Below, piece after piece: positions 56,652-64,000 of a DNA stretch of 64,000 nucleotides. The notes below the pieces were generated by a model. The model had not been told where the DNA came from. It was given only the letters and a program-made list of their open reading frames with translations, and ran no database searches. The stretch is from IMG/VR virus record IMGVR_UViG_3300027759_004177, positions 292,866-356,865 of that record; one strand, given 5' to 3'. Made by a program: the position numbers and the translations under genes. Position 1 is the first letter of the stretch. Each line of letters begins with the position of its first letter.

Positions 56652-57647
56652 TTATTCCTTTTCTGGGTAACTTGCTTCTAAAAATCTAGTGTACTGTTCA
56701 GCGTATTCTGACATTTTTACTAGATCATATTTGCCGCAAAACTTTAAAAAATGGGCACCAATCATGGGGCGGTTAAGTGCCACGCTATTTCCATCTATGG
56801 TGCCACGGATTTTAACTTTGACGTCGTCGGGTTGTGCGGTTAGGTCAACTAGCACACGATTACGTTCATAGTCGTCCAGCACACGATGTTCCTGACCGTT
56901 GTGATCAGTCCAGCGTTGTAGCATTAGATTATTCCACGCAAAGCCTTTCGCTGTTTTATCGTTAAATGCCTCAATGAGTCCCACTTTATTTTTACTTCCC
57001 ACCTTACGCACCCCTGGGTATGCCGAGAAAATGTTATCTGTGGGGTCACCTCGCATACATTTTTCGAAAAGAATCCACTTAGGATCCGGAATTGTTTTTG
57101 GTTCCTTAGTTTTTTTATCTTTGACTGGGGCACCTTTCTTGTCGAAAATACCTTGAATAGTGTGGAGCTCATCTGCGATTCCGTTATATTGATTTACATT
57201 TTCTGCTAGTAGTTGATGAAAGTCTGTATCACTTGACACAATGGTATGATGATCACGTGGGTGGGCTTGTATCCAACCGGCAATCAAATCATCTGCTTCA
57301 AGTTCAGGGTGTTGTAATACTGTGCAGTTTGTTTTTGTGGCCAAGAAGTCTTTGAGAGTATCGAAGCTTTCCCAAAACAATGCATCTTCTTCAGCTTCTT
57401 TTTCTGTCAAGGCCGCACGAGCCACACTACGATTCTTTTTATAAGGCTCATAATAGTCTTTACGCCAACTACGACCTTCCAAGCAGAAAATAACGTGATC
57501 TGCCTTTTGATCTCTCCAGCTCTTATTAACACTATTTAGCGTTACCTGAATGGCGAAACCCAGCCTATCCCAAGTATCAGCTTGACGGTGTGCGGCATGC
57601 CTGGCACGGAAGAAAGTATTAGCGGTGTCAACAAGTAGATATCTCAT
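56652..57647 (-). CDS. rnh: T4-like RNase H / 5'-3' flap exonuclease
   Basis: YLLVDTAN, YKKNR, LEADDLIA, IVSSDTDFHQL, GDPTDNI. ATG at 57647 sits just downstream of a promoter. Confidence 0.88.
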   Translation of the reverse strand: MRYLLVDTANTFFRARHAAHRQADTWDRLGFAIQVTLNSVNKSWRDQKADHVIFCLEGRSWRKDYYEPYKKNRSVARAALTEKEAEEDALFWESFDTLKDFLATKTNCTVLQHPELEADDLIAGWIQAHPRDHHTIVSSDTDFHQLLAENVNQYNGIADELHTIQGIFDKKGAPVKDKKTKEPKTIPDPKWILFEKCMRGDPTDNIFSAYPGVRKVGSKNKVGLIEAFNDKTAKGFAWNNLMLQRWTDHNGQEHRVLDDYERNRVLVDLTAQPDDVKVKIRGTIDGNSVALNRPMIGAHFLKFCGKYDLVKMSEYAEQYTRFLEASYPEKE

Positions 57648-57653
57648 GTAGTT

Positions 57654-57682
57654 ATAATAGCATATAATGATTAAGTTGTCAA
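57654..57682 (-). promoter_or_regulatory. Sigma70-type promoter of rnh
   Basis: TTGACA, 17-nt spacer, TATTAT. Confidence 0.7.
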
Positions 57683-58372
57683 TAGCGTTTGGACATAATT
57701 TTGGTATAGGAATTCGGCCCAGGCGGTATGGGCATCTGGACCAAAATGATATGATCCAGGACGAACCGTTTCGAATCCCCGTTGCTTTAACCAATTGTAG
57801 TAAGTATATTCTGGACTGTATGGATGTATATAACTGTTGCCCCATTCAAATTTTAAAGTTTTGGTAAATGGTTCAAATGTGTTAAAAAATATGTGTGGTA
57901 TTTTGTTCTGGTCAAGATATCTATGCAGTTGGTGTATTTTTTCGTGTGCGTTTCTAACAGCATGATCGTAGTTGATGTTTAAAATGTAACCGCGGTATTG
58001 ATCTTTGATTTCTGTAGGCCAATCTTCACCAATGCCACCGGCATTGACTTGCCAATACTGTTCAGTGCCTTCGTGCCACCACTCTTCTCGTTCCCATGTT
58101 GACCACCCAATGATGGCCAACTCGGGTTTTACAATGTCAAGGGCCTTGTAAGTGGTACGAATGATTCTGTCGTTGCTACTGGCTGACTCTGCATCACATT
58201 GTAGTATGGCACCCAGCATGTTGGCCAACTCACAGCCGTAGCTGACACGTAGATTATCTGGATGCGGTTCACGTGCCATGTTCCAATATAGGCTATCGTC
58301 TTGGGCAAACGAATAGGTGTTTACTGCTTCGGCACCAGCACTATGGCTGTCACCATTTACATACAAGATCAC
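57671..58372 (-). CDS. SGNH-like hydrolase or acyltransferase
   Basis: ILYVNGDSHSAG, AESASSN, GWS, SYHFG. Confidence 0.55.
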   Translation of the reverse strand: MILYVNGDSHSAGAEAVNTYSFAQDDSLYWNMAREPHPDNLRVSYGCELANMLGAILQCDAESASSNDRIIRTTYKALDIVKPELAIIGWSTWEREEWWHEGTEQYWQVNAGGIGEDWPTEIKDQYRGYILNINYDHAVRNAHEKIHQLHRYLDQNKIPHIFFNTFEPFTKTLKFEWGNSYIHPYSPEYTYYNWLKQRGFETVRPGSYHFGPDAHTAWAEFLYQNYVQTLLTT

Positions 58373-58755
58373 GATACTTCAGTACGCCCGTCACCAATAT
58401 CTCTACGTTCAATGTTGCGTGGACGTGCATCTATTGGCTGATTGGCTTCCCATTGTTCAAAGTTTTCTGCCACTACATTTTTACACACATCAGCAAACCA
58501 ACGGTCTACCATGTCTGCATCTGTATCTGCAGGTTTGTGTTGATAACCAGCACGTACCAGATTGGCAATAAACTTGTCATTCCAATCTAGCTCAAATGCA
58601 CCGTTGCCAATGTTGTCTGGATCTAAATCTACACTAAGAATCGCCACATAAGGTTCGCCCTTTTCTGTGGCCAAGTCCTTGGCAGATTTTTTTCGAGTCT
58701 TGGGTGCTTCTGGTTTTGTTTCGGGTTTCTTTTTAAAGCGATCAAATATTCCCAT
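58369..58755 (-). CDS. Hypothetical protein
   Basis: 128 aa; SD AAGGA. Confidence 0.75.
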   Translation of the reverse strand: MGIFDRFKKKPETKPEAPKTRKKSAKDLATEKGEPYVAILSVDLDPDNIGNGAFELDWNDKFIANLVRAGYQHKPADTDADMVDRWFADVCKNVVAENFEQWEANQPIDARPRNIERRDIGDGRTEVS

Positions 58756-59704
58756 TTTTATTCCTTATGTTCTTAATGTAAAAACTTGCTACAAAAAATA
58801 TTACAAATGATGCCAGTGTTATCACAGTTGGTGTCAGCATATTTAGATTTTTACTCATGAAGTAAAAATAGTTTACAGCATTCATGGCCAGTACTGTGTA
58901 CAACATGGTTTCTTTACGTACCCATCCCAACAGTATGTTACCAAATGGAGCAAAAAACAACACCACCGGGGCAGCCGCCAGCCACATCAAATAAACATCC
59001 GGGTGTACAGCATCCAAAAACAAACCACGATAGGCAATGCCAAACACAGTGATCACAGCCATGAGCACAATGCTGATGTCTGTGCTGATCTTTTCCTTCA
59101 TGCCGTAGTAGCAGGTCAACGCAATGTAAATCAACATGTCACTGCCTGTGCCGAACATGGCAGAGGCACAACCACCTATGAATGAAAATATTGTAAAAGT
59201 AACAAATTGGGAACCTTTGAGTTCGACATCATCCACGGTGCCACGACCACGGCTGATCAAGTAGGCCACAATAAAGGCCAAGGCCAGACTCACAAACAAC
59301 ATCTGTACGGTTTTGAAAGCAACAGCACCGGCCACAGTGGTCATAAGCACAAAACCAATCATGTTTACGGCCGCATAGAACGGTATGTGTCTAAATGTTC
59401 GTAGATCATGTCCTTTGCGTGTCAAGATCCATATGGCCGCTGATACCATGCCAATGCTTTGTATAGCCAGACTAAAATCACGTGCCGCAGGCGGAGTAAT
59501 GTTAAAGTATAAACTCAAAATTGGAAATGCCACAGCACCGCCGCCTTCTGGGGTAAAGCCAGCCACTGCTGACCCAAACACCATCATTAACGCATACAGC
59601 CAGTGTGTTTCGTACAAGGCAAAACCCGGTCCGGTCAAGATCAGGTATAACCAAGTGGTCAATACTGCCACTGCCCACACGGGCCAAATCATCATTTTAT
59701 TCAT
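58742..59704 (-). CDS. TauE/SafE-like (sulfite exporter family) membrane protein
   Basis: Multiple transmembrane helices; GFTPEGGGAVAFP and the internal repeat SAMFGTGSD. Confidence 0.65.
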   Translation of the reverse strand: MNKMMIWPVWAVAVLTTWLYLILTGPGFALYETHWLYALMMVFGSAVAGFTPEGGGAVAFPILSLYFNITPPAARDFSLAIQSIGMVSAAIWILTRKGHDLRTFRHIPFYAAVNMIGFVLMTTVAGAVAFKTVQMLFVSLALAFIVAYLISRGRGTVDDVELKGSQFVTFTIFSFIGGCASAMFGTGSDMLIYIALTCYYGMKEKISTDISIVLMAVITVFGIAYRGLFLDAVHPDVYLMWLAAAPVVLFFAPFGNILLGWVRKETMLYTVLAMNAVNYFYFMSKNLNMLTPTVITLASFVIFFVASFYIKNIRNKNGNI

Positions 59705-60201
59705 TTTGCATCCTGTTCTGTTACTTCTACCCAGGTGTAATCACCCAACCACTTGACCTGGCAAATATATTCATAATCTGCAGGCGCACCTGTGGTCCAA
59801 TCATTTGGGCCCAAGTGGGTCAATCTAGTGCCTTGTTTGTTGTGTTCGTAAGCCAACCAATAGGTTTGGCCGTGATACACTTGGAACTCGTACTTGGCGG
59901 CATGTACCATGTCGGTAATATCTAATCGACGCTTGAGTTCTGCTGCTTGTTTTTGTAATACTGTTACCAATTCTGTAATACGGTTATATTCTTGTTGAGC
60001 ATACATACGGGCCACATTGACCATGATGTCTTTTTGCTTTTCAACAGGAATAAGATCAAACTTGGGTCCACCCGCTTCAGTGGGATACGTGCTTACGTTG
60101 CGATTAAAAAACGCAACTAAGGTATTGCCAACTGTGACGTCAAAACTCTCTCGTCCGTCGGTGACATTGGATTTTTTTTCAGTCACTGTTGTAGTTGCCA
60201 A
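59701..60201 (-). CDS. Hypothetical protein (DUF2452-like by recall)
   Basis: YPTEAGGPKF...KQAAELKRR...AKYEFQVYHGQTYWL. Confidence 0.5.
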   Translation of the reverse strand: MATTTVTEKKSNVTDGRESFDVTVGNTLVAFFNRNVSTYPTEAGGPKFDLIPVEKQKDIMVNVARMYAQQEYNRITELVTVLQKQAAELKRRLDITDMVHAAKYEFQVYHGQTYWLAYEHNKQGTRLTHLGPNDWTTGAPADYEYICQVKWLGDYTWVEVTEQDAK

Positions 60202-60407
60202 ATTAAGTGTTCCTGGGGAGCATGATATCTGTATTCAAACACAGGTTCACCGGGGCCGACCCAGACTGCTGTGCCACGATATGCATGTTGCAACCAGATT
60301 TGACGGTTAGTGAGTTCACATTGTTTCGGCCACCAGACAAATACGTAATCCCAGTCGGCTCGTGCATGAAACTGATCATAGTGGTCCATGCCCGGTATGG
60401 GAGCCAT
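60183..60407 (-). CDS. Hypothetical protein
   Basis: ATG at 60407 immediately follows the queE stop; 74 aa, Trp-rich. Confidence 0.55.
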   Translation of the reverse strand: MAPIPGMDHYDQFHARADWDYVFVWWPKQCELTNRQIWLQHAYRGTAVWVGPGEPVFEYRYHAPQEHLIWQLQQ

Positions 60408-60408
60408 A

Positions 60409-61269
60409 TTATTTGCCCCAGCCGTTGCCCCAGAGATCCACATGCAAGCGTGGGCTGTAGTTGAATCCCAGTTTGCAACAGATGTTGGCAATGTTTAGTT
60501 TGTTTGATTCGTATGGATCAACTACACCGCCCTGTGGCATCAAGTATACCACGCCTTTGAAACCGTCATGTCTAAATGCATCCACAGCACGTATGGCTTC
60601 TGTAACGTGATCTTCAGTTTCAACCACAAACTTGAGATAAGTGTGTCCGTAAGTTTGATAGATATTGACAATCTTGGGTTTGATAGCATCATCCCACGAC
60701 TCGCCTGACGCACTTAGTTTGGCACTGACACTGAATGTGACTTCACGTCCGGCTTTGTCACTGGCCCAGTCAATCAAGTAATCGCGGAAGTCTTCGTGTA
60801 GTTCTTGAGTACCGTTGGTTTCAAATGTGATATTCTTCAAGTCTGCCATGCGGTGATGACTCAACAGTTCTGCATAAGCACGTTGCCAACCTAGCAAAGG
60901 TTCACCGCCTGTAATAACCAAGTGAACATCATTGCCATTGTTTTGCATCCACATGTTATTAGGTGTCAGCGCCAACATCTTTTCCACAAGTTCTTCTGTG
61001 GTCAGTGTGTGACTCAGGTGTTTGTAGGCTGGATGCCACGATGCATAACTGTCACATCCTGTTTCTACCAATGGAAGATCGTTGAATGTTTTGTACAGTT
61101 CTACCTTTTTGGCCACGTCATCTGCACCTGTTGATTTTTCGCCAGGCTTGCAACCAAAACCTGAACAGGTAAAGTTACATCCGTATGTTCTTAAGAATAC
61201 GCTAGGTACTCCAACAAAGCGACCTTCGCCTTGTAAGCTATAAAATATTTCGCTGACTTTAATCTTCAT
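60409..61269 (-). CDS. queE: 7-carboxy-7-deazaguanine synthase (radical SAM)
   Basis: EIFYSLQGEG...VFLRTYGCNFTC...GCDS...ITGGEP...ETNGT...SAKL...KFVV...PRLHVDLWG; next to queD and folE. Confidence 0.88.
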   Translation of the reverse strand: MKIKVSEIFYSLQGEGRFVGVPSVFLRTYGCNFTCSGFGCKPGEKSTGADDVAKKVELYKTFNDLPLVETGCDSYASWHPAYKHLSHTLTTEELVEKMLALTPNNMWMQNNGNDVHLVITGGEPLLGWQRAYAELLSHHRMADLKNITFETNGTQELHEDFRDYLIDWASDKAGREVTFSVSAKLSASGESWDDAIKPKIVNIYQTYGHTYLKFVVETEDHVTEAIRAVDAFRHDGFKGVVYLMPQGGVVDPYESNKLNIANICCKLGFNYSPRLHVDLWGNGWGK

Positions 61270-61534
61270 ATATTGTTGACCATTGTGTTAATTTTTGACT
61301 CTTTCTCACTTGTGCCGCATGTAATTCTGCTTCTGTAAAAATATTGTGTGCCTTGAGTAATTCTACTAACAATGTAACATCGCCTAGTTCTTGTACCAAA
61401 TGTTCACGCTGGGTACCACCATCCTTGTAGCTATTGTCAATACCAAAGCGGCGAATCTTGCTGATAGCAACAATAACTTCAGCACACTCCTCTTGCAGTA
61501 TGTCTAAGATTTCGTTAACCTTCGTAGATTGCAC
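61259..61534 (-). CDS. MazG-like nucleotide pyrophosphohydrolase
   Basis: LQEECAEV...ISKIRRFG...LVQELGDV. GTG at 61534 has SD GGAG; the track gives 61570. Confidence 0.75.
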   Translation of the reverse strand: MQSTKVNEILDILQEECAEVIVAISKIRRFGIDNSYKDGGTQREHLVQELGDVTLLVELLKAHNIFTEAELHAAQVRKSQKLTQWSTIYED

Positions 61535-61964
61535 TATTGGCTCCGTGTTCGGCACACTCAACTCTAACACAATAACAACGATTATTAGTTTTTTCTCGAA
61601 TCAATTGATCTGCAAAATTAAAAGCGTGTTCAGCAAACTTTTCTGCACCTACTCCATCAAACATTCGGATCTCTACTAGGTCTAATGCTTGTAATTCTTC
61701 GAACTTGGCCAAGTGTGGATCTTGTCGATCCAGGGCCAACTTGTGATCAAAGTGATCTTCTAGCCAGGCTTTTAGTTCTTTAAGTCCTCCAAAGTCCACT
61801 GCCCAGTTCTTGTTGTCTAATTGGTCACAACCAAATGTAAATGTGAACGCTAGGCTGTAACCATGTAGCAGATGACAGTGACTGTGATCAGCATTGGGCT
61901 GTCTAAATACAGCACTCAATCCAATGTTGTGTCCGTAATGTTTTGTTGAGTAATACTTTGCCAT
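61515..61964 (-). CDS. queD: 6-carboxy-5,6,7,8-tetrahydropterin synthase
   Basis: SHCHLLHGY, VDFGGLK, FDHKL, AEKFAE, VECAEH; SD AGGAG. Confidence 0.9.
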   Translation of the reverse strand: MAKYYSTKHYGHNIGLSAVFRQPNADHSHCHLLHGYSLAFTFTFGCDQLDNKNWAVDFGGLKELKAWLEDHFDHKLALDRQDPHLAKFEELQALDLVEIRMFDGVGAEKFAEHAFNFADQLIREKTNNRCYCVRVECAEHGANSAIYEG

Positions 61965-61970
61965 TGATTT

Positions 61971-62035
61971 CTCCTATGTTAATTATAGCATAGGCGGCAG
62001 AATTTATCAAGCGGGAATGACGCCAAGACCGCTGT
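61971..62035 (-). ncRNA. Candidate cis-regulatory pseudoknot with anti-SD hairpin in the queD leader
   Basis: AGCGG/CCGCU stem with a 14-nt loop; loop GGCG can pair with downstream CGCC; CCUAUG/CAUAGG hairpin covers part of the SD. Confidence 0.4.
61982..62010 (-). promoter_or_regulatory. Sigma70-type promoter upstream of queD
   Basis: TTGATA (62010-62005), 17-nt spacer, TATAAT (61987-61982). Confidence 0.6.
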
Positions 62036-62052
62036 TTTGGGGATATAACTAT

Positions 62053-62598
62053 TTATCTCCACCATTCTTCCCAAGGAAAAACACACCATATGGGTTCTTC
62101 CAGTTTGTTTATTGACATGCCTGTATAGTCTACATCTTTAAAGTCACTGGCCTCGTTGTTGATCAACACAGCAAAACGAACATTGTTGCCCCATACTGTC
62201 TTCCAACGCTCGTGGTCTGGCAAGCAACCGCTTGTCCAATCTTCGCGAATCCAATTTAGGGTAGCACCTGTGTCATTGATATCATCCACAACCAGAATGT
62301 TTTTGGCGTTGATACTGTAATCAAAGTCGGCTAACAACCGTTCTTCTTTGGGCACATATCCAAATGCTTCTTCGGCCATCCACAAGTTGCTTTCTGGTCC
62401 ATGATCACTGTCACGTAAACTTACTTTCAGCGTTTCCATTGGAACTTCTAAATAATGACTCAGCATGGCAGCTGGTACTAGGCCGCCACGAGTAAGTCCC
62501 ACAATGTAGTCAGGCTTCCATCCATCTGCATTCATGGCACGAATGATATCGTGTACCCAAGCTCGAACTGTTGAATCTTTGTAATATACTTTGTTCAT
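62053..62598 (-). CDS. Type I phosphoribosyltransferase (purine-PRT-like)
   Basis: IVGLTRGGLVPA, PRPP-binding ILVVDDINDTGATL, WCVFPWE. Confidence 0.9.
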   Translation of the reverse strand: MNKVYYKDSTVRAWVHDIIRAMNADGWKPDYIVGLTRGGLVPAAMLSHYLEVPMETLKVSLRDSDHGPESNLWMAEEAFGYVPKEERLLADFDYSINAKNILVVDDINDTGATLNWIREDWTSGCLPDHERWKTVWGNNVRFAVLINNEASDFKDVDYTGMSINKLEEPIWCVFPWEEWWR

Positions 62599-62599
62599 T

Positions 62600-62770
62600 T
62601 TATCTTCTCGTGTTAATTCTTATACATTCGGCTAATTCTCGATCTGAATGCGATTTTGTAATACAGTTTCTAGCACTGGCATCAGCCAGCGGATCGTGAG
62701 TTTGATAATATACTGCCATGGCAAGTATGATAGCAAGTAGAATTGCAATAACGATGTCGCTCAATTTCAT
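62600..62770 (-). CDS. 56-aa protein with N-terminal transmembrane helix
   Basis: Translated by hand: MKLSDIVIAILLAIILAMAVYYQ...; SD AAGGA. Confidence 0.55.
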   Translation of the reverse strand: MKLSDIVIAILLAIILAMAVYYQTHDPLADASARNCITKSHSDRELAECIRINTRR

Positions 62771-62780
62771 TTGAATATCC

Positions 62781-63008
62781 TTATTTTTCTAAATTACGTA
62801 TACGCAAGCTAAGATCACGACCATCTGTGACCTGTCGATTTTCAAGTTGTGTTACCTTGCGTTGCAATCTAGAAATTCTAATGTGTGCATATACCAGCAC
62901 AGCAACCACAAGAGTAAATGTCAGTCCCCAACCGGCAACAATGCCGATCATCCAAGACCATAGGTCGGATATTTCTGTTACAACAGCCTGTAGACTTTGT
63001 GTAATCAT
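62781..63008 (-). CDS. Small membrane protein with coiled-coil C-terminus
   Basis: 75 aa; ATGA overlap with the upstream gene. Confidence 0.6.
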   Translation of the reverse strand: MITQSLQAVVTEISDLWSWMIGIVAGWGLTFTLVVAVLVYAHIRISRLQRKVTQLENRQVTDGRDLSLRIRNLEK

Positions 63009-63430
63009 GCAAATGCTTCCTCTTCTAAATAGCGTTTTAATTCTTTGTCCGTGGGTTCTACTGTGTAATTGTTCTTGAAGAAGATTTCGTAGCTGTCCGA
63101 ACCGTATTTTCCAATGCCATACAGTTTGTCAGCTTCATTGCCATCCCATTCCATGAAATCCAGACTCATCTGTGTGAGACGATCATAGCGACGATTTACC
63201 ATGCCCAGACTCCAGATCACATCACGCACCTCGTCCGGAGTGGCCTGCAGGAACGCATAAGGGGTTCTCCACTTGCTCCAAAATACAGGAGCCACAGTCT
63301 TTACGGGTTTACGGCCTGTTTGGTTCAACATTATGACCGCAACCATGTGTTGCCAGGCCGCATCGACACCCTCCAAGCCATCAGGCAACTGCTGTTGCAC
63401 CATGAGATCATCGCGGAGTGGCTGTATCAT
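63005..63430 (-). CDS. HhH-GPD (MBD4-like) DNA glycosylase
   Basis: WQHMVAVIMLNQT...LGMVNRR...LYGIGKYGSDSYEIF...PTDKELKRY. Confidence 0.8.
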   Translation of the reverse strand: MIQPLRDDLMVQQQLPDGLEGVDAAWQHMVAVIMLNQTGRKPVKTVAPVFWSKWRTPYAFLQATPDEVRDVIWSLGMVNRRYDRLTQMSLDFMEWDGNEADKLYGIGKYGSDSYEIFFKNNYTVEPTDKELKRYLEEEAFA

Positions 63431-64000
63431 CTTGGTGCAAACTCTTGTTGCAGTTTGATATTGTCCATGAACTCTTTCTTGGTGCCAGGATCATCTTTGA
63501 ACGCACCTTTGAGCACCGTGGTCTGAGTCAAACTTGAATGTGCCATGATACCACGATTTTCACAGCAACCATGTGTGGCCTGTATGTACACACCAATATT
63601 TTCGCTGTCGGTGGCCCGTGCTATTTCTCTGGCAATGTCGTTGGCCAGTTCTTCTTGTAGAGTACCGCGACGAGCACACCACTGAGCAATCCTAGTGTAC
63701 TTAGATAAGCCAATAAGTTTGTTGGCAGCAATGATACCAATATAAGCCACCCCAGATACAGGCTGGTGATGATGACTGCACATACTACGCAATTCACTTC
63801 TAACAACCAACATTCCTTCATATCGATCCTCACTATCGTTGGGGAAAGCAGTGGCATCGGGTCTGGGTTCATATCTACCTGCCATGATTTCGTTGAAATA
63901 CATCTTGGCCAAGCGTCGTGCTGTGCCACGACTGTTGGGATCTGTCGCACGATCAATCAACAAGGTGTCCAACACCTGTTCAAATGCTTTGGTAGCCTCG
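63427..64000 (-). CDS. folE: GTP cyclohydrolase I, 5'-truncated by the window
   Basis: TARRLAKMY, SMCSHHHQP, GLSKYTR, QEEL, HGCCENRG; frame open to the window edge. Confidence 0.95.
   Translation of the reverse strand, partial: EATKAFEQVLDTLLIDRATDPNSRGTARRLAKMYFNEIMAGRYEPRPDATAFPNDSEDRYEGMLVVRSELRSMCSHHHQPVSGVAYIGIIAANKLIGLSKYTRIAQWCARRGTLQEELANDIAREIARATDSENIGVYIQATHGCCENRGIMAHSSLTQTTVLKGAFKDDPGTKKEFMDNIKLQQEFAPR

Follow-up and report, generated by a model that had tools for sequence, protein, structure and literature searches.

The preQ1-I riboswitch (Rfam RF00522; types I-III) is the described RNA that most closely resembles the element analyzed here. It is an H-type pseudoknot with a 5-bp P1 closed by a conserved G, a P2 formed by the hairpin loop and the 3' tail, a specificity cytosine placed immediately 5' of the P1 3' strand and preceded by U (type I) or A (types II and III), and an A-rich L3 (PMC11625349). 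In these riboswitches a U (UU) directly after the P1 5' strand in L1 reads the ligand, and L3 runs directly into the P2 3' strand, which overlaps or abuts the Shine-Dalgarno (SD) sequence or a terminator, and the preQ1 riboswitches covered in that review all work by occluding the SD or terminating transcription on ligand binding. Other compact H-type pseudoknot riboswitches, such as SAM-II, also combine a small classical pseudoknot with translational control. Here, we analyzed the 88-nt leader of a queD gene in a giant freshwater phage, which holds a conserved RNA pseudoknot that shares several hallmarks of preQ1-I, fails the Rfam PreQ1 model and seems wired to switch translation on instead of off.

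Genomic context of the queD leader

The window, that is, the whole stretch of 64,000 nucleotides that was analyzed, is the last 64 kb of a 356,865-bp IMG/VR virus record (IMGVR_UViG_3300027759_004177) that CheckV rates as complete. A BLAST search of positions 61400-62700 against GenBank phages gave no match, so the group has no deposited relative in that collection at the DNA level. The leader lies on the minus strand inside a deazapurine gene cluster composed of FolE (63427-63975), an HhH-GPD protein (63005-63430), two small ORFs, a purine phosphoribosyltransferase-like gene (62053-62598), the 88-nt spacer, a QueD-like 6-carboxytetrahydropterin synthase (61515-61964), a MazG-like protein (61259-61570) and a QueE-like protein (60409-61269). 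The assignments were supported by Pfam (PTPS, 1.5e-14), PHROG (QueD-like, 1.4e-39; QueE-like, 9.8e-54) and NCBIfam matches.

The initial annotation of this region had proposed a riboswitch-like pseudoknot with a competing anti-SD hairpin, and all of these elements were confirmed. The pseudoknot spans 41 nt (62033-61993, minus strand) and comprises the P1 5' strand AGCGG (62033-62029), L1 UCUU (62028-62025), the P2 5' strand GGCG (62024-62021), L2 UCAUUC (62020-62015), the P1 3' strand CCGCU (62014-62010), an A-rich L3 tail UGAUAAAU (62009-62002), the block UCUGC (62001-61997) and the P2 3' strand CGCC (61996-61993). The anti-SD hairpin (61994-61973) is formed by CCUAUG (61994-61989), which overlaps the P2 3' strand by CC, the loop CUAUAAUUAA and CAUAGG (61978-61973), which covers AGG of the SD (AGGAG, 61975-61971), while the start codon AUG lies at 61964-61962. 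In addition, a sigma-70-type promoter, TTGATA (62010-62005) -17- TGcTATAAT (-10 at 61987-61982), is embedded in the element (62010-61982) with an 11/12 match and is the best promoter-like site in 58000-64000. One item of the initial annotation did not hold, since the GATAAATA sequence (62057-62050) proposed as a box is the end of the upstream phosphoribosyltransferase ORF, with its stop TAA at 62055-62053, 19 nt before P1, and is not conserved in relatives.

Comparative evidence for the pseudoknot

The single sequence did not fold significantly better than shuffled sequences (MFE z-score of -1.1), and it is the comparison with relatives that makes the case for the structure. A scan of viral contigs with the QueD protein found at least 597 relatives, of which the best 80 (85-100% identity) were retrieved, and nearly all of them carry the same leader core. 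In an alignment of 59 distinct cores (A1), P1 plus the pseudoknotted P2 were paired in 87.6% of cells, compared to 64% for shuffles and 38-53% for controls in which the 3' partners were slid by 1-3 columns. The covariation score was 0.547 against 0.164 for shuffles, with 0 of 500 shuffles reaching the observed value, and 10 of 11 pairs showed changes on both sides. For P1, 98.3% of cells were paired and 4 of 5 pairs showed changes on both sides (GC/CG/AU, CG/AU/UA), with variants such as GCGG/CCGC, CCGG/CCGG, GAGG/CCUC, GUGG/CCAC, UCGG/CCGA, AAGG/CCUU and GUCG/CGAC, and 11 P1 sequence combinations were found among 152 distinct leaders. All 6 P2 pairs showed changes on both sides across the family, and P2 occurs as GGCG:CGCC, GGCAU:AUGCC, GACGC:GUGUC, AUGAC:GUCAU, ACGAC:GUCGU, GGCU:AGCC, GGUG:CAUC and GAAC:GUUC.

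The invariant bases of A1 sit in loops rather than stems, apart from the G62029-C62014 pair that closes P1. They include U62020 and C62019 at the start of L2 and C62015 immediately before the P1 3' strand (columns T15, C16 and C20), an A of the tail, and the UCUGC block. The family consensus is N-C-U-U followed by 0-6 variable bases for L1 and W-U-A-Y-A-A-A-Y for the tail. The L1 consensus was seen in the unbiased QueD-anchored set, although the counts from the 152 parsed leaders are partly circular because the parser required CU. Similarly, the UCUGC block (UCCGC in 6 of 152 leaders) was used as a search anchor, and its invariance is partly by construction; even so, 78 of 80 QueD-selected loci carry it.

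Distribution of the motif

Covariance models built from A1 with P1 (R1) and with P2 (R2) found exactly one strong copy (50-52 bits) in the window's own genome and one copy in each of five other 236-356 kb records. Weak second hits of these models in the window's own genome (sequence G000), for example at 62364-62392 of G000 with 17.5 bits, have no P1, match only the tail and UCUGC, and are due to chance. A degenerate DNA pattern scan of all viral contigs returned 80 loci, of which 70 are true matches scoring 32-62 bits with R1. In 67 of 71 instances the first downstream ORF is a QueD homologue, and most of these belong to a QueD subfamily only 37-46% identical to that of the window. In three instances a methyltransferase gene (one locus, and a degenerate extra copy in another) or a cupin gene comes first, while the fourth non-QueD case ends at the locus edge before any ORF could be read. 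Gene order around queD is shuffled among FolE, the phosphoribosyltransferase, HhH-GPD, MazG and QueE, but the motif always stays in front of the first gene of the operon. The same pattern scan of bacterial and archaeal genomes gave only chance-level scores of 23 bits or less, which the pattern itself largely accounts for, and R1 found no hit in the 307 bacterial genomes sampled. We found no paper describing this phage motif.

No Rfam 15 family matched the element. There were no gathering-level hits in the 64-kb window, and a 451-nt scan of the leader region (61800-62250) at E up to 10 gave only three unrelated chance hits (E 1.4-6), with no match to preQ1-I, preQ1-II, preQ1-III, SAM-II, SAM-V, guanidine-III, fluoride or other families. 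The RF00522 model had four matches at E up to 10 in the whole 357-kb genome and the queD leader was not among them, so it scores below 10.6 bits against a gathering score of 39 bits; the best hit (16.5 bits, window 57100-57128) lies inside an ORF (56652-57845) and is a chance match to an A-run. Scans of 10 related loci at E up to 10 gave no PreQ1 hit either.

Expression platforms and direction of switching

The 152 distinct leaders fall into four platform types. In type A, that of the window (77 leaders), the P2 3' strand is followed directly by CCUAUG...CAUAGG, an anti-SD hairpin. In type B (26 leaders), the P2 3' strand runs on into (U)GCCAUUG, which is complementary to CAAUGGCA around the start codon, and in type C (39 leaders) GUCAUC/GUCGUC pairs with GAUGGC and a CCUU pairs with the SD. 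The remaining leaders, type O (10), show UGUCU:AGACA, GCCGUCUU:AAGAUGGC, CCCAUA:UAUGGG, or the variant block CUCC facing GGAG. When only the platform was folded, 97% of leaders had at least 3 expected base pairs between the UCUGC/P2-3' window and the SD/AUG window, where UCUGC can pair with GCA of AUGGCA or with GGAG of the SD. The median platform energy was -9.3 kcal/mol, compared to -3.6 when that segment was made unavailable. The anti-start helix of type B was 87% paired against 27-60% for slid controls, with compensatory changes at three pairs, for example CAUUG:CAAUG changing to CAUCUU:AAGAUG. In type A, the hairpin arms are invariant in 63 of 65 leaders and the two exceptions are compensatory (CCUAUA:UAUAGG and CUCUAUU:AAUAGAG), so that this helix rests on two variants plus a conservation that the overlapping extended -10 promoter element could also explain. 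A chimera control did not separate native from swapped platforms, because all P2-3' strands are complementary to the conserved AUGGCA, a fact that also explains why the P2 5' strands tend to mimic the start region.

In the window, the hairpin has -6.9 kcal/mol in isolation, and the full leader folds at -18.9 kcal/mol with P1 intact and UGCCG plus CCUAUG paired to CAUAGG plus UGGCA. Locking the aptamer raises the mean unpaired probability of the SD from 0.39 to 0.83. P1 is compatible with both states, so only P2 competes, and the 3' strand of the aptamer is therefore an anti-SD or anti-start element whose withdrawal into the pseudoknot should expose the ribosome-binding site, in agreement with the ON logic inferred in the initial annotation.

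Promoter position separates the lineages sharply. Types B, C and O have a TTGACx-16/17-TATAAT promoter upstream of P1, which reaches 9/12 or better in 23 of 26 type B, 23 of 39 type C and 4 of 9 type O leaders. Among the strongest matches (10/12 or better) the -10 hexamer most often ends 7 nt before P1, so the aptamer begins at about +1. None of these 75 leaders has an internal promoter, whereas one is present at 9/12 or better in 68 of 77 type A leaders, with the -35 hexamer built from the last base of P1-3' plus the tail (where type A prefers ACA and the others have UAA) and the -10 hexamer in the hairpin loop, preceded by the TG of the arm. Only 3 of 77 type A leaders have an upstream promoter within 60 nt. 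Nevertheless, P1 and P2 still covary within type A alone (88.9% paired against 78.4% shuffled; covariation 0.251 against 0.087, reached by 0 of 500 shuffles), and the aptamer must therefore be functional RNA there too, presumably on read-through transcripts from the phosphoribosyltransferase gene. The short transcript from the internal promoter would be essentially unstructured (about -0.5 kcal/mol). Two metatranscriptomes holding related sequence gave only short unstranded contigs from 90-99% relatives, without start-site information.

Discussion

The comparative analysis leaves little doubt that the queD leader carries a real cis-regulatory RNA pseudoknot, and, in the absence of ligand-binding and expression data, we consider it more likely than not that this element is a metabolite-sensing ON riboswitch. 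In the proposed ligand-free fold, P1 forms but the UCUGC/P2-3' segment pairs downstream, burying part of the SD and the start codon. When a small molecule stabilizes P2 and the tertiary core, that segment would be withdrawn, the SD and AUG freed, and queD, the first gene of the queD-mazG-queE deazapurine operon, translated. A conserved aptamer joined to varied expression platforms of the same logic, with covarying stems, invariant loop bases and a consistent association with one metabolic pathway, is what a riboswitch looks like. It should be noted, however, that an ON switch in front of a biosynthetic gene is unusual. The initial annotation had also cautioned that the internal promoter would bypass the element, and this promoter is indeed conserved, but only in the lineage of the window. 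We infer two layers of expression in this lineage, in which long transcripts from upstream would be switch-controlled, while short transcripts, lacking the aptamer and the 5' arm of the hairpin, would be translated constitutively. The lineage-specific move of the promoter from upstream of the aptamer to inside it would layer a regulated and an unregulated transcript on one gene.

The invariant C before the P1 3' strand, the closing G-C of P1 and the A-rich L3 suggest a pocket that probably resembles that of preQ1-I and point to a ligand with a guanine-like face, with a 7-deazaguanine or a pterin as the best guess. The window's own genome and the five other large genomes all lack TGT/DpdA and a true QueC, and the window's genome also lacks QueF, so FolE-QueD-QueE would stop at 7-carboxy-7-deazaguanine unless new enzymes act on it. 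Candidate ligands are CDG, preQ0 or preQ1, which would give positive feedback or sensing of the host pool; a pterin intermediate made by FolE (its product or derivatives), which often lies directly upstream and would give feed-forward control; or guanine. A bolder interpretation, which we regard as possible but tentative, is that this is a new riboswitch class, confined to uncultured freshwater jumbo phages, that re-uses a preQ1-I-like pocket to sense a different guanine-faced metabolite (CDG or preQ0, or a pterin intermediate made by the neighboring FolE). It would switch on a deazapurine pathway that lacks QueC and DpdA/TGT and instead carries a purine phosphoribosyltransferase, a MazG-like NTP pyrophosphatase and an HhH-GPD glycosylase-like protein, governing a possibly nucleotide-level route to modified DNA.

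Alternative explanations appear less likely. The structure and its switching helices are equally compatible with a protein effector, for example QueD, QueE or a dedicated repressor or activator, acting on a translational operator as may occur in the phage T4 gene 32 leader or in ribosomal-protein leaders. This reading cannot be excluded but seems unlikely, given that the invariant positions coincide with the ligand-pocket positions of preQ1-I, that the best hit of the R1 model in two genuine preQ1-I loci lands on the aptamer (see below), and that the element is tied to a small-molecule biosynthetic operon across QueD lineages down to 37% identity and through gene-order shuffling, a pattern typical of metabolite sensing. 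Considering the internal promoter match, its conservation in type A and the sequence-level conservation of the hairpin loop and arms, the region could also be regarded as only a promoter and ribosome-binding site, with the RNA folds as by-products. However, this is very unlikely and already contradicted by the compensatory changes in P1 and P2, including those within type A, which promoter function does not explain, and by the conservation of the same aptamer in types B, C and O without any internal promoter.

An ordinary preQ1-I OFF riboswitch that has merely diverged in sequence, with preQ1 binding repressing queD as in bacteria, would be consistent with the H-type topology, the 5-bp P1, the UC or AC before P1-3', the A-rich L3, the association with a que gene and the partial reciprocal model hit. 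Nonetheless, it is also improbable in view of the low scores with the Rfam model, the N-C-U-U sequence of L1, the inserted UCUGC, and the position of the SD 12-30 nt downstream of a P2 3' strand that competes with anti-SD or anti-start pairing, so that pseudoknot formation exposes the ribosome site rather than hiding it.

Riboswitches are rare in phages, and if our reading holds, a covariation-supported, preQ1-I-like pseudoknot with ON wiring, found in more than 150 variants upstream of phage queD operons, would add a new riboswitch subtype or class. It would also provide a compact natural ON switch of about 41 nt for a purine- or pterin-like ligand and a handle on how giant phages time or meter the synthesis of deazapurine DNA modifications that protect against host restriction.

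Comparison with known systems

SAM-II, SAM-V and other compact H-type pseudoknot riboswitches (e.g., guanidine-III and fluoride) share with this element a small classical pseudoknot with a long loop crossing a helix groove and translational control, but the conserved bases and the gene association (queD) differ. The logic proposed here would correspond to that of translational ON riboswitches such as the add adenine riboswitch, in which a segment of the 3' helix of the aptamer otherwise appears to pair with the SD or start codon, although the fold (a three-way junction against a pseudoknot), the ligand and the gene context differ. The phage T4 gene 32 leader pseudoknot appears likewise to be a phage 5'-leader H-type pseudoknot involved in translational control, but it probably serves as a nucleation site for its own protein product, while here the loops are conserved in a preQ1-I-like pattern and the regulated gene encodes a metabolic enzyme.

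The resemblance to preQ1-I, whose shared pocket hallmarks the initial annotation had missed, is the closest one. Both are H-type pseudoknots with a 5-bp P1 closed by a conserved G-C, an invariant C directly before the P1 3' strand (preceded in the phage leaders by U in 120, A in 16 and C in 16 of 152) and an A-rich L3, and both sit 5' of a 7-deazaguanine pathway gene. As a reciprocal test, genuine preQ1-I aptamers from Bacillus tequilensis (44.9 bits) and a Macrococcus genome (32.7 bits) were retrieved, and R1, run without filters on these 3-kb loci, placed its best hit in each exactly on the aptamer (11.5-11.9 bits, E about 0.003), with an alignment covering P1, L1, P1-3' and the A-rich tail, but not UCUGC or P2-3'. 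On the other hand, L1 is N-C-U-U plus 0-6 nt instead of UU (first base U in 56, C in 52 and A in 44 of 152 leaders), an invariant UCUGC with no counterpart in preQ1-I follows the A-rich tail, P2 is longer (4-7 bp), variable and lies away from the SD, the predicted logic is inverted, and the element was found only in viral contigs among the sequences searched. The element is therefore best described as a distant preQ1-I-like variant, and not as a member of the preQ1-I family.

In a few relatives the first gene after the motif is not queD, but a SAM-dependent methyltransferase (locus L171, 4665-5339, minus strand) or a cupin protein (locus L162, 6412-6750, minus strand). In addition, locus L107 (7-54 and 68-754, plus strand) has a degenerate second copy of the motif (28.6 bits) in front of a methyltransferase-like gene, about 1 kb upstream of the normal copy. 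The best match to the Rfam PreQ1 model in the genome (16.5 bits, E 0.15), found on the minus strand at window positions 57100-57128, lies inside the 397-aa ORF 56652-57845 and is a chance match to an A-rich stretch.

The predicted MazG-like ORF, with a GTG start at 61570, overlaps the 3' end of queD by 56 nt (61515-61570); the true start may be further downstream, or the two genes may be translationally coupled. Besides, a strong terminator-like hairpin, AAAAAAAGCACCGCGAACGGTGCTTTTTTTG, was observed in locus L087 at 1545-1570 (G000:C1 about 62408-62433, G000 being the window's own genome, outside the window); this hairpin lies between convergent ORFs and is flanked by A and T runs, so it could terminate in both directions. 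Two freshwater metatranscriptome runs (X1 and X2) contained contigs 90-100% identical to parts of the queE and queD region (window 60155-61928), indicating that related phages are present in RNA libraries, although this does not prove transcription.

The deazapurine cluster (window 58742-63975, minus strand) has FolE, QueD and QueE, but the whole 357-kb genome lacks QueC, TGT/DpdA and QueF, while five related large records (G001-G005) also lack TGT and a true QueC. Instead, a purine phosphoribosyltransferase-like gene, a MazG-like NTP pyrophosphohydrolase, an HhH-GPD glycosylase-like protein, DUF2452 and a TauE-like membrane protein travel with the cluster. This suggests a non-canonical, possibly nucleotide-level, route from CDG to a modified base.
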